From Trichosphaerium sp. ATCC 40318 (Eukaryota > Protista > Tubulinea), in the NCBI GenBank assembly GCA_038496445.1, contig JALMLS010000310.1, positions 1 through 64,000 of the forward strand: a stretch of 64,000 nucleotides of DNA, given 5' to 3'. Shown one piece after another: positions 8,738 through 62,291 of the stretch; position 1 is the stretch's first letter; each line of letters starts with the position of its first letter. A model generated the notes under the pieces. It worked only from the letters and a program-made list of their open reading frames with translations. It made no database searches and had not been told where the DNA came from. The position numbers were made by a program, and so were the translations under genes.

Positions 8738-8808
8738 TGCACCGGCCGGGATTTGAACCCGGGTCACATCCATGGCAAGGACATATGATACCCCTACACC
8801 ACCGGCGC
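8738..8808 (-). tRNA. tRNA-Gly (GCC)
   Basis: GCGCCGG-TG-GTGTAGGGGTATCAT-A-TGTCC-TTGCCAT-GGATG-TGAC-CCGGG-TTCAAAT-CCCGG-CCGGTGC-A folds as a 71-nt cloverleaf; T5 terminator 7 nt downstream. Confidence 0.93.
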
Positions 8809-8934: not shown

Positions 8935-10902
8935 AAAAGTATAAAATGTCCCAATTCTAGGTAAAATGTCCCCACTTTTCAATTTTAAAATGCCTCGCAG
9001 AAGTGCCGCAAAGGCTAAAAACATGGCAGAGGCCACAAAGGAAGTACTTCATAAACTAAAGAAGCGTAAACCTTCACAAACACTCTCAATTCGTCAAATT
9101 TGCATCACAGTGGCTAAAAAACACTGTGTTAAATCAGAATCACTACGAAAGCGTGTTCAGAGGGCATTTGCAAAGGAGAATTCGGAGAATTTCAAATCTC
9201 ATGGCAACCAACTTTTTACGGATTTTGAAGAAGAAATGTTGGTTGGCTACTGTTTGAGTTTTAGCGGGCGTCATATGCCTCTATCACGTGCAGCCTTGAT
9301 ATCTATGGCACAAAGTCTGTACAAGAAGAAGAAGTCGACCAGTATGGAAGCTTGGTGTGATGGCTTCACTGAAAGACACAATATTGAACTCAAAGCCACT
9401 GTTTCGAAGACAATTCGCCGCTGCCGTGTATCTCCTGTCACTCTGCCACGTGTAGAAGCTTGGTGTGATGGTTTTGAGCGATTCTCAGAGATGTATTATA
9501 TGAACCCAGATTTGATGTTCAATTGTGACGAAAAGTTGATAACAGCATCAAGTGACAAGTATCAACACATTACCTTTCAAGATAGAACGATGAAAATTGC
9601 TGGGCGGCTGAACAATAACACAAGCAGCCCTCTCACGTTGATTCCGTTTGTTTCAGCCTCTGGATGCGTACTGGTGTCAATTTATATAATGGCAGCAAAA
9701 AACAAAGGTGATGAACAAAAAGTGCATCAAATGACAGTACCCAGACCAACAAATACCCGCTCTTCATGGCCTAGATACTATATATTTCATGGTAAAGGGT
9801 ATGTGACCAACGAAATTTGGCCAAAAATTCTTGATGTGTTCTTAAAGCACTTGAAAATTTTTCAAGGGGACAGGGTTGCATTTTTATTCCTTGATAGATT
9901 GGCCAGCCACATTAAAACAGAATCGTTACAAAAATGCCTTGAACAGCATGTACACACTATCACATGGGTGCCTCATACCTCACATTTCACGCAACCCTTA
10001 GATGACAAGCCATTTGCTACCCTAGCTCAGGCATATAAATTAAACAGGAAAATTACAATTGAAAGTGGCACAGAGATCAAACATAAAACACGACGTTATG
10101 ACATAATGGCTGTTGCAGCTGCAGAGACCAAAGCACTGTCTCCCAAAATCTTAAAATCGGCATGGAAGTCCGTGGGTATTGTACCCTACAACAGAAAGTT
10201 GATCTTAAATCATGCTTCAAAAAATGTAGGGGTCCAACCTAAACAATCACCTTCCTTCATCACCGATACTTCTAAAAAAGCCAAAAACGCTATGGATGAG
10301 CTATACAGCCACAGCAATCAAGTAAATGCCCTAACAATCGGTCCAATGACAGTACCAAAAGGGGATGCTTATATTGCTACCCAAATGGTTGAATTAGCAA
10401 AAAAAAAAAAGATAGATAAAGAACAAGAAATTAAACACAAGGCAGAGCTAAGGCAACTCAAGAGAGATGCTAAACAAAAAAAAATTGAGGAGGAGAATGT
10501 TCATAGAGAGGAGACAAGACAGAAAAAAGAAAAAAAAAAACAGGAAAAAAAACTTGCTGCTGCTAAGAAGAAGTACAAAAATGAATGTGAGACCTGTCAG
10601 ATATGTGGCGAGCGCTTATGGAGGGGAGGATCTACGTGGGTGTGGTGTGAAGTCTGTGATCAGTATGGGTCATGCCCATGCTGCTTAAAAGAATTTGATG
10701 GAAAAAAAATGGTTGAAATGCACGAAGAAGAATGTACAGGAGGGCGATCTTTTGGTAACTGGTACTCAACGCAAATGGACACATCATGTTAAAATCAGAA
10801 TAAAAAAGTATTTTTTTTAAGAGCGTAGCATCAATTTTTTGTTCAAAAAAAGTGTTGAAAAGTGGGGACATTTTACCTGTGGTTGGGACATTTTATACTT
10901 TT
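8935..10902 (+). mobile_element. pogo/Fot1-like (Tc1/mariner superfamily) DNA transposon
   Basis: 48-bp inverted repeats 8935-8982 and 10855-10902 (44/48 identical), each with two TAAAATGTCCC motifs. TA dinucleotides lie 2-3 nt outside. The repeats enclose a single intact transposase ORF. Confidence 0.9.
8966..10792 (+). CDS. DDE_1 (pogo/Fot1) transposase, DD35D, with CENP-B-like HTH, Lys/Glu coiled coil and C-terminal Cys-rich (PHD-like) finger
   Basis: FNCDE (D1), LFLDRLASH (D2), PHTSHFTQPLD (D3; 35 aa spacing); C-terminal CQIC..WVWCEVC..CPCC. Intronless. The first ATG lies inside the TIR; ATG 8990 is the likelier start. Confidence 0.92.
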   Translation: MSPLFNFKMPRRSAAKAKNMAEATKEVLHKLKKRKPSQTLSIRQICITVAKKHCVKSESLRKRVQRAFAKENSENFKSHGNQLFTDFEEEMLVGYCLSFSGRHMPLSRAALISMAQSLYKKKKSTSMEAWCDGFTERHNIELKATVSKTIRRCRVSPVTLPRVEAWCDGFERFSEMYYMNPDLMFNCDEKLITASSDKYQHITFQDRTMKIAGRLNNNTSSPLTLIPFVSASGCVLVSIYIMAAKNKGDEQKVHQMTVPRPTNTRSSWPRYYIFHGKGYVTNEIWPKILDVFLKHLKIFQGDRVAFLFLDRLASHIKTESLQKCLEQHVHTITWVPHTSHFTQPLDDKPFATLAQAYKLNRKITIESGTEIKHKTRRYDIMAVAAAETKALSPKILKSAWKSVGIVPYNRKLILNHASKNVGVQPKQSPSFITDTSKKAKNAMDELYSHSNQVNALTIGPMTVPKGDAYIATQMVELAKKKKIDKEQEIKHKAELRQLKRDAKQKKIEEENVHREETRQKKEKKKQEKKLAAAKKKYKNECETCQICGERLWRGGSTWVWCEVCDQYGSCPCCLKEFDGKKMVEMHEEECTGGRSFGNWYSTQMDTSC

Positions 10903-20212: not shown

Positions 20213-22411
20213 TTATTGCACGCATGGATAAGGACACCACCTTGTAGTACTTGCATACTGACCTGTCTTTGGAACTGAGATCATTGAGAAGGTTGTCTGC
20301 AGATTCAATGTTGGCTTTTCCTCCAAAATCTAGTTACGCAAAAAAGGTAAGTTTAAATCTTAGAACATTTGTAAGGGGGTAGGGCTTACCTTCATCATTG
20401 ACTTGGCATTGATGTTGTCTTGTCCTAATGCTTCCATATGGTAGTTACCAGGTACACGTCTATCATCCCACCAAGGAGCAGGGTTCCAATGATCGTAATT
20501 TGTTTGAAGCAAATACCATTTTCCTGGCTCATCTCCAAGTACCCATGGGTGATTTGATGTATCATTTCTATTTCTAGATAATACAGTACCTAAAAATTCG
20601 AGGGGTAAATTTAGGACGAAGTGGTAAGTTTTGTATGAAAAGCATCGAAATGTTTGTGCCGTTGGTTTTTTGTTCGTTTTTTTTACCTTGTCCTGGGCTC
20701 TTTCCTCCTATTGTGTAGTAAACATCAGCGATCAACATATCTTTACTCAATTGATCTACAGCAGCAGGGAAATCGTTTTCGTTTTGAAGAACATGACGTG
20801 TCAAAAAAGTGACAAGGCTTGCATTTTTTTCCTCAATGGCAGCTACTGCTTCATAAAATAGTTGCTTAATGCCTCCAGGATAGTTACGTGTATTAACTGA
20901 CACAGAAAACTCTCCAGGCTTTTGTCCGCTCAAAACACCAACGTATCCTAAATTAAACAAAAACACGTGAGCGAGATCTATAAATAGCAAAATATCCGTA
21001 CCAGCAAAAGTTGTTGTCTTGAATAGTGTTTTGTTGTTGCGTTGATAATGTGCCTCATAAGCAATGTCTTTTAGCGTATCAGTGAATCCCATACCAGCCC
21101 AGAAATCCATGTTACGTCCATGGTAGATTGTTCCATCTTTTCCTTGAGCAACAATCGATGTACACGCATCACTAGCAAAGACTAAGAAAATGGCTTGCAA
21201 CTCCGGATTGCGTACGTTAATTCGTATCCTAAGTTGAAAAGTGACAACCAACCTGGAGAAACACCTACTTGTTTAGCACAACCACGTATTCTAAATGAAG
21301 CAGTCAGTACACATAATTTCCTGAGTTTTGCGTACTCTGCGGCTAGTTCTGTTGGAAAGTAAAAGTAATTTAAGGCATCACCCAAATCAGAAATAACTGG
21401 AGCTACATCACCCAACAGTTTTGTTACCTGAGAAAACATCTTAGTAAATATATTTTGTTGTTCTTGCTTGATACGCACTGTGTCCACGAGGAAATTTATG
21501 TTTGTCTTAAAGCTAGGAACAGAACATACTTCAGTATCTAGAGAAAAGGTTGGTAACAATAAAGATTTGTTTTGTGCACGTCACTCACATCTGTCTTCAG
21601 GAGCGAGATCCAAGTTAATAAAATGAATATTCACTGGTGAAGGATCCACGTGAGTCTTAAACGGAGCACATTGACCAATCTCATAGCAAATACGAGAAAC
21701 GGTCCACTGCTGAGTGAGCATTTTAAACTACAGCAGAAGTGAGAAAAAAAAGGTCGTTGATATTTCGCCTTATTTTTCAAAATAGGCAATTTTTTTGTGA
21801 CCTTGAAACGTCACCACAAGAAGCTTATAAAGGCTTGTAGCCCATTAAAAAGGATTTTGTTGTAACGTTGGGTGTGGTAACATGAAAAATACCATGGTGC
21901 GTACAATATCTGGGATTGTGTTGACAGTTGTCATACATATTGTTTTAAGCTCTCCAGAAAGAATATTACATAAATCTTGTGTTAACTTTTCTGTAACTTC
22001 AGTCTCAGTAACGTTCTCGAGTAATAATCCCTCAAGCTCATTTATAACAATGCCACATATGGCGCCTGGAAAAGAACATGAGTGCGAAATTTCAAAAGTG
22101 CAGTAAGCGGTGGAAGAAAAAACTAGGGTGAACCAACTTTAGGCCTACTTTTTGAAGGTGAGTGTGCCGGTATGTTTATGCCACGTGATTGAATCCAGGC
22201 AAAAATGAATTTTGATCGTAGTGCCGTAACTTTAGAACGTACAATCAAAGGTTAGATCATCCGGGTTTGCAGCTTTTATATCCGCAATCTCATTAAACGA
22301 CTGCTTAGGTATTTTGTTCAATATCGCCTTCAAAGAAGGTTTTTGAACCGGGTATAATGCGGATATTGCACTACAGATACAAGCAAGAACAAAAATGAGC
22401 CGTAGGTCCAT
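20213..22411 (-). CDS. Acid ceramidase/NAAA (Ntn hydrolase) with N-terminal saposin B domain
   Basis: Signal peptide; saposin DCAICGIV..DLC..TIC..RICYEIGQC; INLDLAPEDR; CTSIVAQ..GTIYHGRNMDF; GYVGVLSGQKP..FSVSVN; LQTNYDHW..DDRR; C-terminus RWCPYPCVQ. Confidence 0.92.
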
Positions 22412-22516: not shown

Positions 22517-23435
22517 ATGAATGGAAACTCAAGGTACATCCGTAGACGCCAACCGAGAAACGTACGACACTTAAAACGACAACAGTTAATAAAAACGTTC
22601 AAAACGTTTTTTACGCTCGCTGATAACGTAAAACGGCGGTTAAACACTTCCTAAGATTTGAAGAAAAATGTGTTGTATAATTTATTTCTAAAATTGCTGT
22701 AGGTTGTTACTCCTGGACTTGCCTCTTGAGATACAATGTGCGATTCACGAGCTTGAGCCAGAAGTTTTTGAAAAATGGCCTCTTCTTAATTTTCACACTG
22801 CCACTTCATCCAGGTTTGATAATAACCTTTGTAAAAATCGCCTATGGAAAGCTTGGTGTAAGGGGACTCTTGTAAGAACACAACGATTTGATCATGGGGA
22901 GCAACATGGTAAAAGTTGTGTTTATTATAATAGTGGACAAATTGCATTTGAAACTCATTTTGTTCATGATGTACAACAAGGAAAGTATAAAGAATGGACT
23001 TTTGGTGGTAAACTTTATGAGAAGTGTTACTACAAAGAAAATTTAATAGAAGGCGTTTTACTACAATGGCATAAAAATGGAAAAGTCAAAAAAAGGTGCT
23101 ATTATGTAAAAGGAAAGAGACATGGTGAACATACTTTTTGGTACCCTTCAGGATCACTTCGTGAGTTATGTTATTATAAAGACGGTATAGTAGAAGGTGA
23201 GTACAAAGAGTGGCATAAAACAGGAAAATTACACGTGCATACTTTCTATAAAAATGGTGAAAGACATGGAGAGTACAAACAGTGGTACAGTAATGAACAA
23301 ATTTGGAGACACTTAAATTATGATAATGGTGAACTTAATGGAGAATGTAAAGAATGGTCTACAACAGGGGTAATGACAGCTTTTATATTGTATGATCATG
23401 GCGAACGAACTCAAGATCTCATGCAACAAACTTAA
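22517..23435 (+). CDS. F-box-like + MORN-variant (MORN_2) repeat protein
   Basis: Short exon 22517-22533 plus exon 22703-23435. LLDLPLEIQCAI followed by ~7 repeats of G.Y.EW..NG.L.....Y..G..HG. Confidence 0.8.
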
Positions 23436-26673: not shown

Positions 26674-27831
26674 ATGTTTAATGCCGTTCGAGCTAGATAC
26701 ATCTTTGGGCGTAAAGTTGTTACCACAAACCGTGTCAAGACAAACCATACGCCTCCAATACCTTCGAAAATATCCTCACCCAAGCAACGAACTCACATAA
26801 GCTACAAACAATCTGTATGTCATTTCACCACTGCAAAACACGCCAACATTCGCATCAGAGCTTTATTATACCAACAAACTCTTCCCACAACGCATTTACA
26901 ATTTATTTAGCCTTATACAATACAACCTCGCTTTTACTGTTCTACAAAAGCTACAAATGACGGTCACACGTTCAAAATCGGTGTTATTCCGTACACATAT
27001 TCAGGAGAAATGAAGGACGGCAAAAAACACGGCGTGGGTAAAGCCACATGTCCAAAGGCTCCAACGTTTGAGGGAAGATGGGAAAACGACGCTTTCATAC
27101 CAACTGATGGAGTTATGACGTTTCCAAATGGTGCTGAGTACATTGGAACACTTACTGATAAATACCAGTTTCTAAAGGGTATATGGAGTATTGGTCCATT
27201 AACGTGGGAAGGTGAATGGGATGGTAAAATGTTTAACGGAGTTGCAACGAATACTTTATCAAAAACAGAAAAAAAAGGTACCTTCGAGAACGGTAAACTT
27301 AAGTCAGGTCATTTGAAGGAGAAGGGTGTTTTATACAAAGGAGAGTTTGATAAAGAAGAAAAACTAGTATTAGGTACTGTTGATGATGGTAAGACTATTA
27401 AATCAGGTGACTGGGAGGAAGGAAAGTTAACAAATGGAAAAATTATATTCCAAAATGGTGAGATTTATGAAGGGAATTTAAAAGATGATATGTACCATGG
27501 AGAAGGTATATTAACTGATTCAACAAAAGATGTTGTATTTGATGGACATTGGGTAGAGGGTGTATTTACTGGAAAAGGTGAAAGAAGGCTTCAAAATGGT
27601 ACTCTGTATAAAGGTACTTTTGAAGATGGAGACTTACATGGTTATGGAGTTATGGAAACTCCTGATGGTGTTAGTTATGACGGTGAGTGGGTTAATGGTT
27701 CTATGGAAGGTTATGGTGTAGGTAAGATGCCTAACGGTGTTGTGTATGATGGTATGTGGAAGGATTGCCAGTTTGTTAGAGGTAAGACAATAGATGAAAA
27801 TGGAGTTGAACATTTCGCAGAAAATAAATAA
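26674..27831 (+). CDS. MORN-repeat protein with probable mitochondrial presequence
   Basis: YxGxWxxGxxxGxG repeats. Intron 26815-26910 joins the two same-frame ORFs. Confidence 0.85.
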
Positions 27832-31427: not shown

Positions 31428-32192
31428 ATGGCTTTAACAACTAATGGAGAAGATCGTATAGTCGTACTGATTGATGCAGATAACGCACAATTAAGTAAAT
31501 TAAAGTACATTCTTGAGGAACTTTCGAGATATGGTAATATCCTTGTTAAACGTGCTTATGGCGACTGGTCTCATACTAGCCTCAAGAATTGGCCGCAAGC
31601 TCTTAACGAACTAGTAATTCAACCAATGCAACAGTTTGCATACACTAAAAAGAAGAACGCTACGGACATTTCAATGATAATTGAAGCGATGGATTTTTTA
31701 TACGAAAAAAAATTCGAACTGTTTGCTTTAGTTTCATCCGATAGTGACTTTACAGCTCTTGCTATACGTCTAACACGTGAAGAGATAAAGGTGTTTGGAT
31801 TCGGAGAGAAGAAAACACCTGTATCTTTTTGTAACGCATGTGGGACATTCATCTACACGGAGAACTTGGGTCCTATAGGAGGAAAAGTAGCAAATGTTGA
31901 AAAAGTCGAAAACTTCATTCCTGTCCTTGAACGTGTTTGGGAAGATAAACAAGATCAGTTCGAATCAGGATGGGTTAATATTGCAGGTCTTGGTATTCTT
32001 ATTTTAAGGTTAAAGCCTGATTATGTTCCGAGGAATTATGGATGTAAAAAGCTTCCTGAAATTTTATCAAAGTTATCCAATTACTTTATTTGTATAAAGT
32101 ATAAGGGTAAAGGTACTGTTAAGATTATAGTGTATAAACTTCTTAGTCAATATGTAAAAGGAGAAGAGAGTTGCTTCGATATTGTTAAATGA
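31428..32192 (+). CDS. NYN (LabA/DUF88 PIN-like nuclease) + OST-HTH/LOTUS protein, intronless, bacterial type
   Basis: VLIDADN, KRAYGDW, QQFAYTKKKNATDISMIIEAMD, LVSSDSDF..LA.RL, GFGEKKTP; LOTUS GWVNIAGLG..PDY.PRNYGCKKL. Confidence 0.9.
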   Translation: MALTTNGEDRIVVLIDADNAQLSKLKYILEELSRYGNILVKRAYGDWSHTSLKNWPQALNELVIQPMQQFAYTKKKNATDISMIIEAMDFLYEKKFELFALVSSDSDFTALAIRLTREEIKVFGFGEKKTPVSFCNACGTFIYTENLGPIGGKVANVEKVENFIPVLERVWEDKQDQFESGWVNIAGLGILILRLKPDYVPRNYGCKKLPEILSKLSNYFICIKYKGKGTVKIIVYKLLSQYVKGEESCFDIVK

Positions 32193-37206: not shown

Positions 37207-38442
37207 ATGCCACACAGAGTAACGCTGGGCCATATACAACTTATTTCGCGTAGATTATACCACTCAAACTACGAAGAGCGACCTAACCGCCCTACACGCA
37301 TTCCTTTAAAAAGTAGGGCGGTTTGGAAGGCATTGAAGAATCCAGACGTTGAAAAATGGCGTAAAGTATATTTCGATAATAAAAACACACCTAAGTACCC
37401 TCCTATGTCTCATTGGACATTTTCAATGTCACGTATAAAGGATTATGACTTGGCTGTTTCTGAACTAGAAGAACTCAAGCAACGTCCAGATTTTGTGATG
37501 GATCGTAGGATATTAAACGTACTTATAAGGCTATCTCCAGATGTAAAAACAGGAATGGATTTTCTACATAAATACATCGATAGCGACGATCCTACAATTG
37601 CTCCAGACGTAGTATCAGTTACAAGTGCATTGGAAATATGTTGTAAATTTCGAGATCCTGAGTCCGCTTTGAAACTAAAAGCTCAAATGGAAGAGCGCGG
37701 TATTGAACCTGATTTTTTGACGTATGTTGCACTATTGAAGATGTGTTTGCAAGAGAATCTACCAACAGAGGGACTGGAGTTTGTAGCAGAGTTGAGACAG
37801 AAGGAAATACGGCCTAATACTTTTATATATAGCTCTGCTATTACTTTTGCATTTGCTCTAGAAAAGAATGAATTGGCTATGGCTTTTTTTGAAGAAACAA
37901 AGAGCTCTGTTGGTTGTAGTGTTGCTATCTATACAACTGTTTTAAAACATTCTCCTGATGCAATGTTTGCTTGTAGGATTATGTACATGGCTAAAGCGGT
38001 ACGTGTTTGGTTTTTTTTTCTTTTTTTCACTTTTTTTCCTATTTTTTTCACTTTTTTTCTTCTTTACTGTCGTCTTCTGTGATCAACTTTTTTCAAATAT
38101 CTTTGCAATACCGCGATTAATTATTTTTGTCTATCGCATAATTGTTGATTTTATTCGCAGGACTCCGCCAGACGTAAAATTTTTTTGAACATGAAATTTC
38201 TTCAACAATTTAAAGAAATTGTAATCAAGTTTGGACCTATCGACGACTCTTTATTGCCAAGAATTGTTGATGAAGATGTTGCACCAGATGGCACACCAGG
38301 GGAGCTATCAAGAGGCCAACAAGTAATGCTATGGGATGATTTTGATAAGTTCTTTTTGCATCTACGTGAATCAGGAAAGGTACCCAAAGAAAATTGGAAC
38401 AAAAAACCTATGGAGAACGTAACAAGCAAATTTGACTTTTGA
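37207..38442 (+). CDS. Pentatricopeptide-repeat (PPR) protein, probably mitochondrial
   Basis: PDVVSVTSALEIC, MEERGIEPDFLTYVALL, IRPNTFIYSSAI, SVAIYTTVL; presequence-like N-terminus. Confidence 0.85.
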
Positions 38443-48252: not shown

Positions 48253-50849
48253 TCAAAAATGAGTTTCCCATTGTAAGATAACACTTGCAGTATGAGAAAA
48301 TTGAGAATTCTTATTTTGCATGATAACTTTCATATCTTCAATATCATCAAACAATTCATCATTCACTTTACAATACTTTCTTATGATTGCTATACTAATT
48401 AAAGCAAGACCAACTGGTCTACCAAGTTGAAAAGAGTATGAGCCAGTAGTAACAAACCTAGAAAAGAAACAATGAGCTCATTGATCCAACTATTAAAAAA
48501 AGATGAAAACGTTGTCCGTTTTTTTTGTTCGAAAATCTCATACCCTGCAAGAACTCTTTCTCCATTTACATCAATAAAAAGCCTTGTTTGTGGATGTGGG
48601 GTACGTTTTTCACCATATACAATACCAGAAACGAACTTCATGTTGGATATGTCCTAAAACAAAATAAACTTTCAAAAAAAACAACTGTAGATTTTCCTAA
48701 TTGAACAAAAACTTACGTCATCTATGCAACGTGCTACTGCAGCTACAGCTCCAACACGATTTGACTCAATCTGGGTGTTATTTGAATCTAAGAGTTTGTT
48801 CCATGGTATTTTAAACGGTGAAGCAATCCTAGGTAAGTAAGTATAAAGTCAGACATGCTAAAAACGAAAACAAGAAAATTTTTTCTCGTACTTTAAAGCA
48901 TCATAGTTAACACGTTTACTAGGTGGCTTAGACATCCACTTTTGTTTGTCCTTCTTAGCCTCAGAATCTGACCATTCAGTATAAGCAGGAGAGTCGATAA
49001 AATCAAAAGGAAACCGAGGAACTTGCTGCTCAAAGCCAATTCTAGAGCGATCTCTAAATCCCATAACACGAGCTCCTTTAAATAAAAGAGCTTTGAAAAT
49101 AGGTGCTCCCCATGAAGATGGTGCAATTATTGACCATCCAGAACCGAACCCATTTCTAGCGCCAGGTATGGTATACATAAGAACAGATGTTTTAGGTGGA
49201 TTCATAATTTCAGTAAGAGACATATTTGTTTCTTTTGTTCCTTTTCCTTTTTTTTTTGAAATTTTTACTTCTGACCTGTACTGACTACCCCACATTTGTG
49301 ATTGAACATAGCTATCTTTTATATTTATCATTGGTTCTTCTGAATTCACTCTTACATGTGTTGCTATCCATTCAGGTACCTTGAAGCGCATAAGTGTTTA
49401 ATAACTGAAAAAGAAAAAAGTTGGTTTGGAATCTTACTTCGTTTGATGCTGACGTCGTTCCCTTCTCTATGCTTTCTCTGAGACAAACATAAGAAGGATG
49501 CTTTAATGTAGCTCCGATGAGTGTTCCATAAGGTAATGAACCAACCCTGGTACTAAGCATCTTATCAACAACATGAGCATTGACACCGTTCCCTTCCTCA
49601 GCATCTAAGAACGAAAGAGATCTCTTGATAATAGACCCAGCTTGTGGGCCAAGAACTTCAATAAATATCAAGTCGTCCAGCTTGGTAAAAATAATCTCTT
49701 GCATTGCGTCTGTAGAGCAGAAATCAGCAAAAAAAAAGATATCAAAAAAAAAAGAAAAAACATTTGAATTTGCTTTAAGCAGTTTCTCTTTCTCTTACGA
49801 TCATGTTACAGACTTTTTTTATATGCACGTACCCTTGTTGAATATATCCAAACGCTCTTTGAGGAATTTACAAGCAAGAGTAGCTCCAGCTGGATGAAAA
49901 ACTAACCAACATTTTTGTTGTTCCATTTTTGGACCAAAAATAACATCAAGGACAGACAACACTTCTCCCGTTATTGTATCCTTCAACAACAGATTATGTA
50001 TTACCCCACCAGGTTTTCCCATACATAAATGATCTTTTGGGAGTAGCAATAGTCTTGCAAAAGCAAGAATCGTGTCGAAATCTTTACAAGAAAGTTCAAC
50101 AACCGTTTTGTATGAAGCGTCATGTAAGACAGCTGATTTACTAACGCCACGATAAAGAGCACGCTCTGATTTATCTACAGGAGCCCATGGCTATCAATAG
50201 AGTAAGCTTGATTACGCTGTAGGCGATAAAAAGGAACGAGATCAAGAATTGTATGCGTACTATTTTAAATCCCCACAAAGGCCTCATTTTGAACCTCTTA
50301 GCGTGCCAAATATGTGTTTCCAACCATCTAGTTATTGTTTAAATGCTAACGCGTCATTGTTTTGATTGTACTTGAACTCTCGCTGCCTGTCTTCATATCC
50401 ATGTCTCAATAGCGCGTGACGTCGCTTAGAAACGCGATATTTGTGTTTTGACCCCTTTTCTTTTTTAAATGGTACTCCGCCGTTGCGGTGCTCTCGCATA
50501 GCAGCACCACGCAACCGGTTTGGCAATAAATAAACGTTGTGTGACATTTGGCGCCTACGTAAGAATCTCGGCAATTTCTGCATGCCAGTAAGTATACAAG
50601 CGTAAATACCGGCGTGTGTAGGTTTTCGTTAATAATTACCTGAAACACTCTTCCTCTTGGCTCTTGCTTTACGTGGTCTTGTAGAGCTTGTATTTCCTTA
50701 GCTCTAGCCTCATACAGCATTCTGACATTAACCACTATGGGCGCAGCTTCATTTTTACCAGCTATACGTGTCCCAGATTGCTTCTTAGTATCCTTTTCCA
50801 TAGTACTACCCTTCTTTCTGCGCTTAGGGTTTGGTTGGTTATCGCTCAT
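48253..50849 (-). CDS. POP1: RNase P/MRP protein subunit POP1
   Basis: ARAKEI..L, FQKLPRFLRRRQMSHN..LP.RLR, WLETHIWHAKRFKM..LWG, LHDASY, GSGWSIIAPSSWG, FPFDF.DS, KPPSKRVNY. Confidence 0.95.
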
Positions 50850-51487
50850 ACCGCTAACAAGGAAGAACAGCCTAAAAAGAGCAAAACTTAATCACGATTT
50901 ATTAAGGAAGCGAAAGCAAATCCTATCAACGTGTGGTTACGACGTGGTTACATACTTGATATGCAACAGCATTAAATCACGTGTCAGTGCTCTCTAGTAG
51001 TTTTTTTTTTTGGCAATTGCACTGGCTGTACTGCTCTGCATACGCGCAACATGGCGCTTTTCAATGTCACGTTTCAGTATTTTAATTGACATTTGGAATC
51101 AAGCCAATTTGTTTTGTACATGTGTACATAGCACTATGAAATGGTATTGTTGAAACTCATTAGATGCTTGTTTTAGTGTGAAGACTTTGTAATTCTATCA
51201 ACAACTTTGGCACCTAGAACAATAACTGCAATACGTATACACGGTTTGTTTAGGGCGTATTCTACCAAGCGCCAGCTTTAGCAACTACCACCATATTTAT
51301 GGTTTTTTTTGTGCAACGAAATCTCGAGGTATTTGAATTTCTACCACACTCCACAAACACTAAAGCACTTTATTATAAAACTCACATTTACCACTATCTA
51401 CCACCACACCTGCTTTCAATAAACGTACGGTATAATAGAAAAACAACTAAAACGCTAGTATAACTTTGTTTAAATACTACGTAGGGT

Positions 51488-59587: not shown

Positions 59588-59598
59588 AAAAAAAAAAA
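59588..59598 (-). terminator. Oligo-T Pol III-type terminator candidate
   Basis: T11 immediately after the 3' strand (CACCAC) of the outer stem. Confidence 0.45.
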
Positions 59599-59830
59599 GT
59601 GGTGATCGCGTCAAGTGCCTCCTATTGTTCGAAGTTGTTCAATAGCCATTTGTGCACCAATATATCACCGGACATGTACGAAGTAATTTGATCTTGGGAG
59701 TCAAACGCCTATCCAATCGGCCACTCCTCACATCAATTAGAGGAGGCAGGAATCGAACCTACTTAATTTTGTTTTTTGTTGGTGGAATGGTAGCACTGCG
59801 GATTGAGACACTTTAACTTTATTGCACCAC
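59599..59830 (-). ncRNA. Candidate ~230-nt structured RNA containing a circularly permuted tRNA(Leu)-like module (59676-59762)
   Basis: Order on the minus strand: T-arm GTAGG-TTCGATT-CCTGC, 3' acceptor CTCCTCT-A, 7-nt linker, 5' acceptor TGAGGAG, TG, D-arm GCC-GATTGGATA-GGC, G, anticodon arm TTTGA-CTCCCAAGA-TCAAA, variable arm TAC-TTC-GTA. Enclosed by nested stems and followed by T11. Confidence 0.65.
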
Positions 59831-60277
59831 GACTATCCAAGTCAGTGTATTTCTTTTAACTAACATAAAATACTATCTAAAAAAAAAGTGGGTTTCTAGC
59901 AACATTGCCATAGTACAAGGCGAGCATATTGAGGTGTTAGGACCAAAGATTTTTTCTTCTTTCAAATGGCTCGAACGCCAAAAAGAGTAATACACTTCAA
60001 TACACTTAGTCTATAACTGTATGAGTTCTACGTAAGTATTTCTTGCTAATTTTGACGTGTAGCCACGTGTAAGTTGAGTATATTAATGAAAGGTGTAAAC
60101 TAATTTTATCTATCACTGAATTGTGCAACTTTGTGTTTCAGGTGGTGTTTAATGGCTACGGCTTGGTAACCATATCACATACGAGCAAAGAATGTACAAG
60201 CATGACACATAGATTTTTTGTTGAAAGAAGTGTCGCTCATTTAAAAATAACTTGGTGCATATCAAGTGCAGTGTGAT

Positions 60278-62291
60278 TTAGTAGTTTATTACATGTTCGC
60301 ATTTCAGTTTTTTATCATAATTATAGTTCAATTCTCTTTCGCCTTGAGTACACGAAACTACCTATTCCATTTCAGTAAGCAACTAAGTTAAAGAAACCTT
60401 CAAATTATGTAGCAGCAATCATCCCTTTTTTGGAAGCAAAATCCAACAAGTCAGAATTTTTTCTTTTTTCAACACTCTGTGAATGAAACGTACGTGGATT
60501 TGTGATAATATACTAGGTGATATATAGCTAACATGAACAGGGTAGAAAATTTTGTTAATATCTTCCTGGTTGTTATCGATTTTCAAGGTAAACGAAAGAC
60601 ATCCAGATTCTTCAGATGAAGCTGTAAGACGTTAACAAACAGGTGGATACAATTTCTGTCTACAACACATACTTAAAAAGGGTATATGCCACTCTAAAGC
60701 ATTACGGATACACTCAAAATTATAAGCACCTCCAGATAGTTCCGTTACTTCAGGCATGAACCTAGGGTTGTTTTTGGTTAAGTTTCTGTTTCATTTTCTA
60801 TTGTAACACATACGGTACAGGAATCGAAATGCATACATCTTTCAAAGGAGCATAGAAGTTGTTTAACGTGTAGTCTACATTGACTATAACAACTCCATCA
60901 GTTCCACATGAAGGCCAAATATCCACTGTAAAAACAAAGTAAGAAAACTTTAAGAGTAAAAAAGTATACTTACCAACTAGTGGAAAATTCTCTTCCTGGT
61001 CGCTACAGTACCTCCACTTAACTAACGTTTGAGACTCTCCCAATTTAGTATTCTTCCTCAAAATTATTTTTCCTTCATCCCTCCAAGCTGCCTTGTTTGT
61101 GAGAGGGTGCACCTTCAAGACAATTATTAGTTCTTTCTCTTGAGTTCATTAACACTACCTTGTATCTTAATCCTTGAATTGGCTCCTTGGTTAACTCAAT
61201 AGCGGGCAATGTAGCGTTTGAAACATTTGCTGTATATTCAAGACACCCAGTAAGATCCATCGAAGCCTGAGAGCCATTCGATAAAATATTTAACTTTTCG
61301 CGTAAGATAATAGCACTTGAGAACAAGTTCAGTAAAACATATACTAACACTAAGCAGCTCACCTTTCGTTGACCTCCTGCAGATCCTCAGTTTCAAACTC
61401 ATTGCTATCCGATTCAGGCATTTTTTGCATGTAACGTGAGGCTTGTAATTGCGCACTATCTTGATGTTTTTTTAATACCATCCCAGTGCTTTCAGGCTCT
61501 GTACTAATGCTATCACGTGACGTTCTTTTCATCCTATCAACCTCAACTATTTTGGGTTTTATATTATAGCCTAAGCGACCTTGCGGGTTTTTCATATGCT
61601 TTATACGACCGTCTTTGATTCTATTGACGTGGTGATGCATATTCGTTAGTACACGTGTATGTATTTCCTGTAAAAAAAAACATTAACAAAACTGGTTGTT
61701 TATCTTCCTTAGTACCGATAGAGCTTTATTGAAATTAATCTCCGATATGCTATACATCTTTTTGGAAAATTCCTCGACTTGATCGATTGAGACTCTGTTG
61801 GAGTATCCATCCACTGACACTAACTCATCAAAACCGAAAATGATTTCGAACACGTTTTTTTTGACTTGTTCCTCCGAAACACATTGATCACAAAACCGTG
61901 ACATCTAATAAAACCGTCAATTACATTGTATAAAGTTGTTTTAGTATGCTTACCAGTTTAGTACATAAGTTTAGAGTATTCAAATCGTTGAACACGTTGC
62001 TGTTTTTTGTTGTCAATAAAATGACTTTCAAGTCATTTACTGCTTGATACAAGTAACGGACGTGGTTTGCTTCAAAGTAAGTGTGCTGACGTTGCCCATT
62101 TTTTCCGTTGTTATAAATATAATACAGACCTTTAAACGATTGTAGTAATGTAGTGATACGTCTTTTAGTGATATCAACAAACTGTCTTGAAACCAGAACT
62201 ATTTTTTTGGTTTTCGTCAGCAACTCAACTTGTTAGGTTAATACTAACCTTTTCCTGTCTTGGACAATACAGATACCGCTAATATAGTCAT
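60278..62291 (-). CDS. ARCN1: Coatomer delta subunit (delta-COP), divergent
   Basis: MTILAVSV..LVSRQF..QHTYFEANHVRYLYQ..TTKNSNV..DLNTL, FEIIFGFDELVS; mu-homology domain HP..K..W, LVKWR..PL.VDIWPS, SGCLSF, FYP..V. Confidence 0.85.

Follow-up and report, generated by a model that had tools for sequence, protein, structure and literature searches.

A transcribed, permuted tRNA-like RNA on a predicted rod in the amoeba Trichosphaerium

The locus and its neighbourhood

The window analysed here is a 64,000-nt stretch of the genome of Trichosphaerium sp. ATCC 40318 (contig JALMLS010000310.1). Its GC content is 37.6%, its introns measure 52-228 nt and the cDNA is from single cells, all in line with the published Trichosphaerium genome (GC content 37.69%, mean intron 75 nt, Takara low-input kit); the paper describing that genome never mentions tRNA (PMC10521059). 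An ordinary tRNA-Gly(GCC) gene occupies 8738-8808 (-), with a Tc5/pogo-type DDE transposase frame at 8966-10792 (+) starting 158 nt upstream of it on the opposite strand. Other frames carry choloylglycine hydrolase (20574-21251), MORN_2 (22704-23435), MORN (27010-27831) and PPR (37207-38082) domains. An exon at 48858-49391 (-) encodes the POPLD domain of the RNase P/MRP subunit POP1, so that an RNA-based RNase P/MRP is likely to be present. The intronless gene at 31428-32192 (+) encodes a NYN and OST-HTH protein (LabA/DUF88-type) that is 56-59% identical to proteins of marine gammaproteobacteria and was likely acquired by lateral transfer.

Near the far end of the window, a 243-nt unit extends from 59830 to 59588 on the minus strand (Table 1). 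Its tip is a cloverleaf in permuted order, with the 3' half of a tRNA ahead of the 5' half. The original prediction had described the cloverleaf as a permuted tRNA(Leu)-like gene at 59762-59676 (-) and had not included the surrounding unit. Each of its elements was found where it had been placed, the reversed order and the single occurrence of each arm were borne out, and the spacer is indeed 7 nt.

Table 1. Features of the unit and its immediate flanks, in the order of the minus strand.
Feature	Position	Strand	Basis
AT-rich TATA-like stretch, about 35-45 nt ahead of the closing helix	59866-59873	-	sequence; weak
Closing helix, 5' strand GTGGTG (partner 59604-59599)	59825-59830	-	pair probability 1.00
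Leader, 5' arm of the rod	59781-59824	-	folding
Leader helices	59817-59814, 59812-59805, 59801-59799, 59796-59793, 59791-59788, 59784-59781	-	folding
A-rich single-stranded linker; end repeats AAATTA of the anticodon stem/variable region	59763-59780	-	
T arm with a TTCGATT loop on a canonical 5-bp stem; B-box match as well	59746-59762	-	
3' acceptor strand (59745-59739) and discriminator A73 (59738)	59738-59745	-	
7-nt spacer closing the acceptor stem	59731-59737	-	
5' acceptor strand; 6 Watson-Crick pairs and a U1.U72 mismatch	59724-59730	-	
U8-G9 and 15-nt D arm: 3-bp stem, A14, U15, G18-G19	59707-59723	-	
Anticodon arm: perfect 5-bp stem, 9-nt loop (59700-59692)	59687-59705	-	loop also in cDNA contig
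Possible short variable arm (3 bp, probability 0.10) or start of the trailer, 11 nt	59676-59686	-	
Trailer, 3' arm of the rod; side hairpin (59645-59622) and 3' strand of the closing helix	59599-59675	-	folding
T11 run, RNA polymerase III terminator-like	59588-59598	-	sequence
cDNA contig cover, depth 4, template-switch adaptor at the 59820 end	59618-59820	-	

A permuted cloverleaf at the tip of a rod

A scanner for permuted cloverleaves reported this site as the only one in the window and found none in 5,200 simulated 64-kb sequences (order-3 Markov) scanned on both strands; the T, acceptor and D part alone occurred 10 times among the same simulations. Where the full permuted pattern appeared in 1.5 Mb of retrieved loci, prokaryotic and viral, it stemmed from tandem tRNA arrays; unlike in these arrays, the outer tRNA halves are absent at the amoeba site. 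Read in its native order, the sequence gave no match at the site with ARAGORN or Rfam, and an Rfam search of 501 nt with E values up to 10 returned nothing for the unit. Once re-ordered, it is called as a tRNA by ARAGORN. The exact permuted pattern was absent from the viral contigs searched. Looser patterns, run against metagenome, viral and prokaryotic collections, retrieved only tandem tRNA arrays, ordinary tRNAs and bacterial YrlA-type RNAs, with no orthologue among them, and BLAST against phages yielded nothing beyond 21-nt T-arm matches to tRNA-Asn.

Folded within the whole unit, the T stem, acceptor stem, anticodon stem and D stem pair with probabilities of 0.94, 0.93, 0.96 and 0.64, respectively, and an alternative pairing of the anticodon arm with the leader has a probability of 0.00. 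The z-score of the module folded alone (-0.5) is not significant. Of the tRNA consensus, U8, A14, G18-G19, U33 and the T loop are kept, with departures at U1.U72, U15, the 9-nt anticodon loop and an unclear variable region. These departures sit in loops and at the open acceptor end; all stems are perfect.

Two details of the original prediction, the leucine identity and a fixed break at 48/49, are not supported, and a third, the type II variable arm, is not secure. Against ARAGORN's default cut-off of 100, the join first proposed scores 99.7, or 104.5 with one more base, and class I joins that take their variable loop from the leader reach 104.8 and 107.1 (119.2 for the window's normal tRNA-Gly). 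The end of the leader repeats the AAATTA of positions 41-46 in the 5' half and thereby makes the join ambiguous, with workable solutions from about 40/41 to 48/49. The supposed variable arm, with its 3-bp stem and pairing probability of 0.10 in the whole unit, is one of several possible readings of this region. As for tRNA-Leu(CAA), A73 is present, and the long variable arm and a CAA at positions 34-36 are not. The 9-nt loop can be read as Leu(CAA)+2, Trp(CCA)+2 or Gly(CCC)+2: CCA is central, CCC follows U33, and CAA takes its place only once two C are removed. In a comparison with 608 prokaryotic and viral tRNAs, a set biased by the search pattern, the body came nearest to Gln(CUG), Tyr and Ser rather than Leu, so that an isotype from alignment settles nothing. 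No amino acid type can be assigned. ARAGORN's Gly(CCC) call implies a 2-nt intron, which is too short to be credible. A 37/38 join was likewise discarded, being without an H helix and needing an A31.A39 mismatch, as does any 7-nt anticodon loop here.

The cloverleaf is borne by a predicted rod. Leader (59830-59763) and trailer (59675-59599) form a duplex of -35.5 kcal/mol (z -3.4), matched by 4 of 2000 shuffles and by 9 of 2126 genomic controls, its own site being among these controls. The 6-bp helix that closes the rod with a probability of 1.00 has the T11 run directly 3' of it, an arrangement that suggests a polymerase III gene. Of 71 segments lying ahead of a T8+ run in the window, the unit is the most stable; its folding z-score as a whole (-1.55) is not significant. 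The T11 run (59598-59588) is clear, as in the flanks of permuted genes, and the upstream stretch at 59873-59866 is AT-rich only; such stretches, like the A-box-like word at 59829, are too frequent to be taken as evidence. At about 51070-51303 (+), the last six bases before another T8+ run also pair far upstream (-51 kcal/mol), with no tRNA module between. Three further elements lie ahead of the unit on the minus strand: a small B-box-like hairpin (approximately 59980-59967), a second CCAC-T9 end that copies the unit's own (59891-59879) and a segment that agrees with the D-loop region 59716-59705 at 11 of 12 bases (59840-59829). The hairpin and the second end have no RNA coverage. The segment may be what is left of the first member of a tandem pair, but repeats of this size also arise by chance here.

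Transcription and the competing readings

One study covers the stretch. Its run X1 is cDNA, as it skips four introns of the adjacent Ras gene. One cDNA contig of depth 4, present in one of the three runs of the sample, spans 59618-59820 colinearly with the gene order and passes uncut through leader, module and trailer. Its loose end is what we take to be the SMART template-switch adaptor. The Ras reading frame, on the minus strand, has this adaptor at its 5' end, which suggests that the unit is also read from the minus strand, contigs by themselves proving neither strand nor ends. In the Ras gene (59308-58500, -) the adaptor abuts the start codon; a very short 5' UTR, or else truncation of the cDNA, would explain this. 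The contig has no indel in the anticodon loop; the 9-nt loop is therefore no assembly slip. At 59841-60300 there is no RNA coverage. A ligated or back-going joint was not seen in this single depth-4 contig, and its absence proves little, since an oligo-dT library would miss mature tRNA.

Contig and window differ at 5 of 202 places, compared with 2 in about 600 nt of the Ras mRNA, and the contig may represent an allele or a second copy. One change, G64 to A, replaces G.U by A-U in the T stem, another replaces A-U by G.U in the rod, two others add pairs, and none breaks any. With 105 of 600 random mutants folding equally well and a chance of about 0.2 for four non-breaking changes, the pattern lends weak support to selection on structure. 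A permuted tRNA-like RNA at 59762-59676 (-), transcribed and set on a rod, is real.

What this RNA does is less certain. The reading that we prefer, at a probability of roughly 0.45, is a tRNA mimic that is stable and does not decode, with the build of bacterial YrlA but outside that group. A small gene at about 59840-59588 (-), with RNA polymerase III and its promoter presumed, would yield an RNA of ~245 nt, its two ends paired as a long rod and its tip formed by a head in the shape of a tRNA. The head would run from T arm to loop-closed acceptor stem and then to D and anticodon arms, retaining the elbow makers (U8, A14, G18-G19 and the T loop) and, with its 9-nt anticodon loop, U1.U72 and U15, lacking the features required for decoding and charging. 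It probably derives from a tandem pair of tRNA copies whose outer halves were lost. Such an RNA would presumably be stable and have binding partners. The duplex statistics and the closing helix speak for this, as do the uncut and jointless state of the only RNA seen, the four contig changes that keep or add pairs, and the lack of a strict BHB at any join. So does the YrlA layout: a pattern derived from the amoeba element retrieved YrlA loci next to a Ro60 gene, a likeness of layout. Against it stand the reliance on one depth-4 contig of oligo-dT cDNA, the weakness of structure-keeping changes as evidence, the missing Ro60-binding motif, Rfam match and known partner, and a complete anticodon arm that is unexpected in a YrlA-type mimic. 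The adaptor also lies 10 nt inside the predicted closing helix.

The same four departures from the tRNA consensus (1:72, U15, the two extra loop bases and the unclear variable region) would befit a decaying copy of a permuted tRNA gene family, still transcribed from its kept promoter and terminator into a low-level, oligoadenylated RNA that is degraded and has no job. We regard this as somewhat unlikely. The low depth in one of three runs agrees with it, the contig is more divergent than the Ras mRNA, and capture by oligo-dT would suit a tailed decay substrate. Against it, the four tRNA stems and the rod are all intact, and every pair is unbroken in the contig. The damage is confined to decoding and charging features and spares the stems, which favours the mimic over both a decaying copy and a working tRNA precursor.

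Rather doubtful, in our view, is a working tRNA matured by a BHB-free route. Here the rod would be cut near positions 41-49 and the ends ligated, or a two-piece tRNA left, RNase P and RNase Z would open the acceptor loop, CCA would be added, a Thg1-like enzyme would repair U1, and the 9-nt loop would serve a reader of frameshifts or odd codons. Each arm is present once, the 7-nt spacer and downstream T run are as in Cyanidioschyzon merolae (PMC3978253), class I joins pass ARAGORN, and A48 from the leader could pair with U15; variable-arm hairpins are moreover tolerated in engineered tRNAs (PMC7590224). The joins add one weak helix in its favour. As the original prediction had remarked, no clear BHB is visible: the 1,470 joins scanned contain no strict one, and of 14 H=4 hits a single one leaves the arms intact, an A-U-only helix with 1-bp flanks at chance level that would give a 73-nt product joined at 59683/59762. 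R15:Y48 and the 1:72 pair, which known permuted tRNAs keep, are missing, the cDNA confirms the 9-nt loop where a 7-nt loop would need its mismatch, and the contig has no joint. Between a new permuted-tRNA pathway and a tRNA mimic, the alternatives of the original prediction, the second has the better support for this copy.

Very improbable is a fossil join of neighbouring organellar or bacterial tRNA genes (a NUMT or lateral transfer), or an error of assembly. The body of the tRNA looks prokaryote-like (with Gln(CUG), Tyr and Ser closest in the biased set of 608), bacterial tandem tRNA pairs show the same pattern, and the window holds a bacterial-type gene. Yet the outer halves are absent, the flanks form a rod ending in T11, the neighbours are intron-rich nuclear genes, and the cDNA contig follows the assembly through the module; misassembly and two whole adjacent tRNA genes, which had been named as possible refutations, are excluded by the contig and the absent halves. 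The least probable reading, a tRNA-like signal, in the manner of MALAT1/mascRNA, for cutting a longer polymerase II transcript at its 3' end, would draw on a same-strand upstream gene that appears to end near 60420 and on an adaptor that can sit anywhere in truncated cDNA, and is countered by the lack of coverage at 59841-60300, by the unit's own closing helix and T11, and by a permuted order that mascRNA does not have.

We hold more tentatively than the non-decoding mimic itself the possibility that the unit belongs to a whole family of amoeba polymerase III RNAs, of many tRNA types, carried back half first on a rod and free of BHB. These could be either the first eukaryotic YrlA-like mimics or permuted tRNAs with an unknown cut-and-join or two-piece maturation, the unit described here being an odd-loop member.

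Relation to known permuted and tRNA-like RNAs

Our literature search found no paper on permuted tRNAs in amoebae, and the original claim of novelty outside algae and Thermofilum held. A 2026 review of photosynthetic organisms names permuted tRNAs for algae and archaea only. Reported permuted tRNA genes come from a few algae and one archaeon, all with BHB, and reported permuted tRNA mimics (YrlA) from bacteria and phages.

The known permuted genes have breaks at 15/16, 20/21, 37/38, 50/51 or 59/60, spacers of 1-74 nt, a downstream T run and an upstream TATA-like element, and they keep R15:Y48 (PMC3978253). With those of Cyanidioschyzon merolae, prasinophytes, the Bigelowiella nucleomorph and Thermofilum pendens the amoeba unit shares the order, the 7-nt spacer, the T run, the AT-rich upstream region and the single set of arms. 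It differs in lacking a strict BHB, in a break between 40/41 and 48/49, in the ~70-nt leader and the trailer that form the rod, in its non-canonical loop, 1:72 pair and position 15, and in its amoeba host.

Animal Y RNAs resemble the unit in the polymerase III-type end and in the single-base bulge of the terminal stem. On its 3' side, the rod's strand CACUUGAC is presumably reminiscent of human Y3; the likeness fails on the 5' strand. The strand read by Ro60, GGUCCGA, is absent from the 5' arm, no Rfam match was obtained, A takes the place of C as the bulged base, and a tRNA head is not part of animal Y RNAs. Two-piece (permuted) tmRNA shares the permuted order and an acceptor loop that RNase P could open into two paired pieces. 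The unit, however, has no G3.U70 alanine acceptor and no tag reading frame, it has an anticodon arm, and neither ARAGORN nor Rfam called a tmRNA.

The nearest likeness of layout is to YrlA (Rfam RF02553), with its paired ends, a T arm ahead of the D arm, a closed acceptor stem and no anticodon loop (10.1101/312249, PMC4201824). A long stem replaces the anticodon stem, and the Ro60/Rsr motif GNCGAA(N)G lies near the 5' end (PMC4201824). In Mycobacterium smegmatis, RNase P opens YrlA and CCA is gained, a precedent for a two-piece form. The amoeba unit has the same end-paired long stem, T-before-D order, loop-closed 6-bp acceptor stem and elbow bases. In contrast to YrlA, it keeps a full anticodon arm, its rod leaves from the variable region, it is about twice as long, and its host is a eukaryote. 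GNCGAA(N)G was not found in the 5' arm (best match with 2 mismatches, at 59817), and RF02553 gave no match in the 501 nt with E values up to 10, the control loci scoring 72 bits. At locus L001 (1140-960, -), as well as at L013 and L015, a further YrlA-like RNA and the beginning of another, both below the Rfam cut-off, adjoin a Ro60 gene and a YrlA called by Rfam. In a phage tRNA cluster, locus L193 (732-800, +) holds a permuted T arm, a closed 7-bp acceptor stem and a D arm, with no Rfam match.

Between the permuted genes and YrlA stands this amoeba's permuted tRNA, which is transcribed, lacks a BHB and sits on a rod. It exposes a gene class missed by ARAGORN and Rfam, and it makes testable, in a strain kept in culture, the route by which tandem tRNA genes are proposed to have given rise to permuted tRNAs and Y-like mimics.
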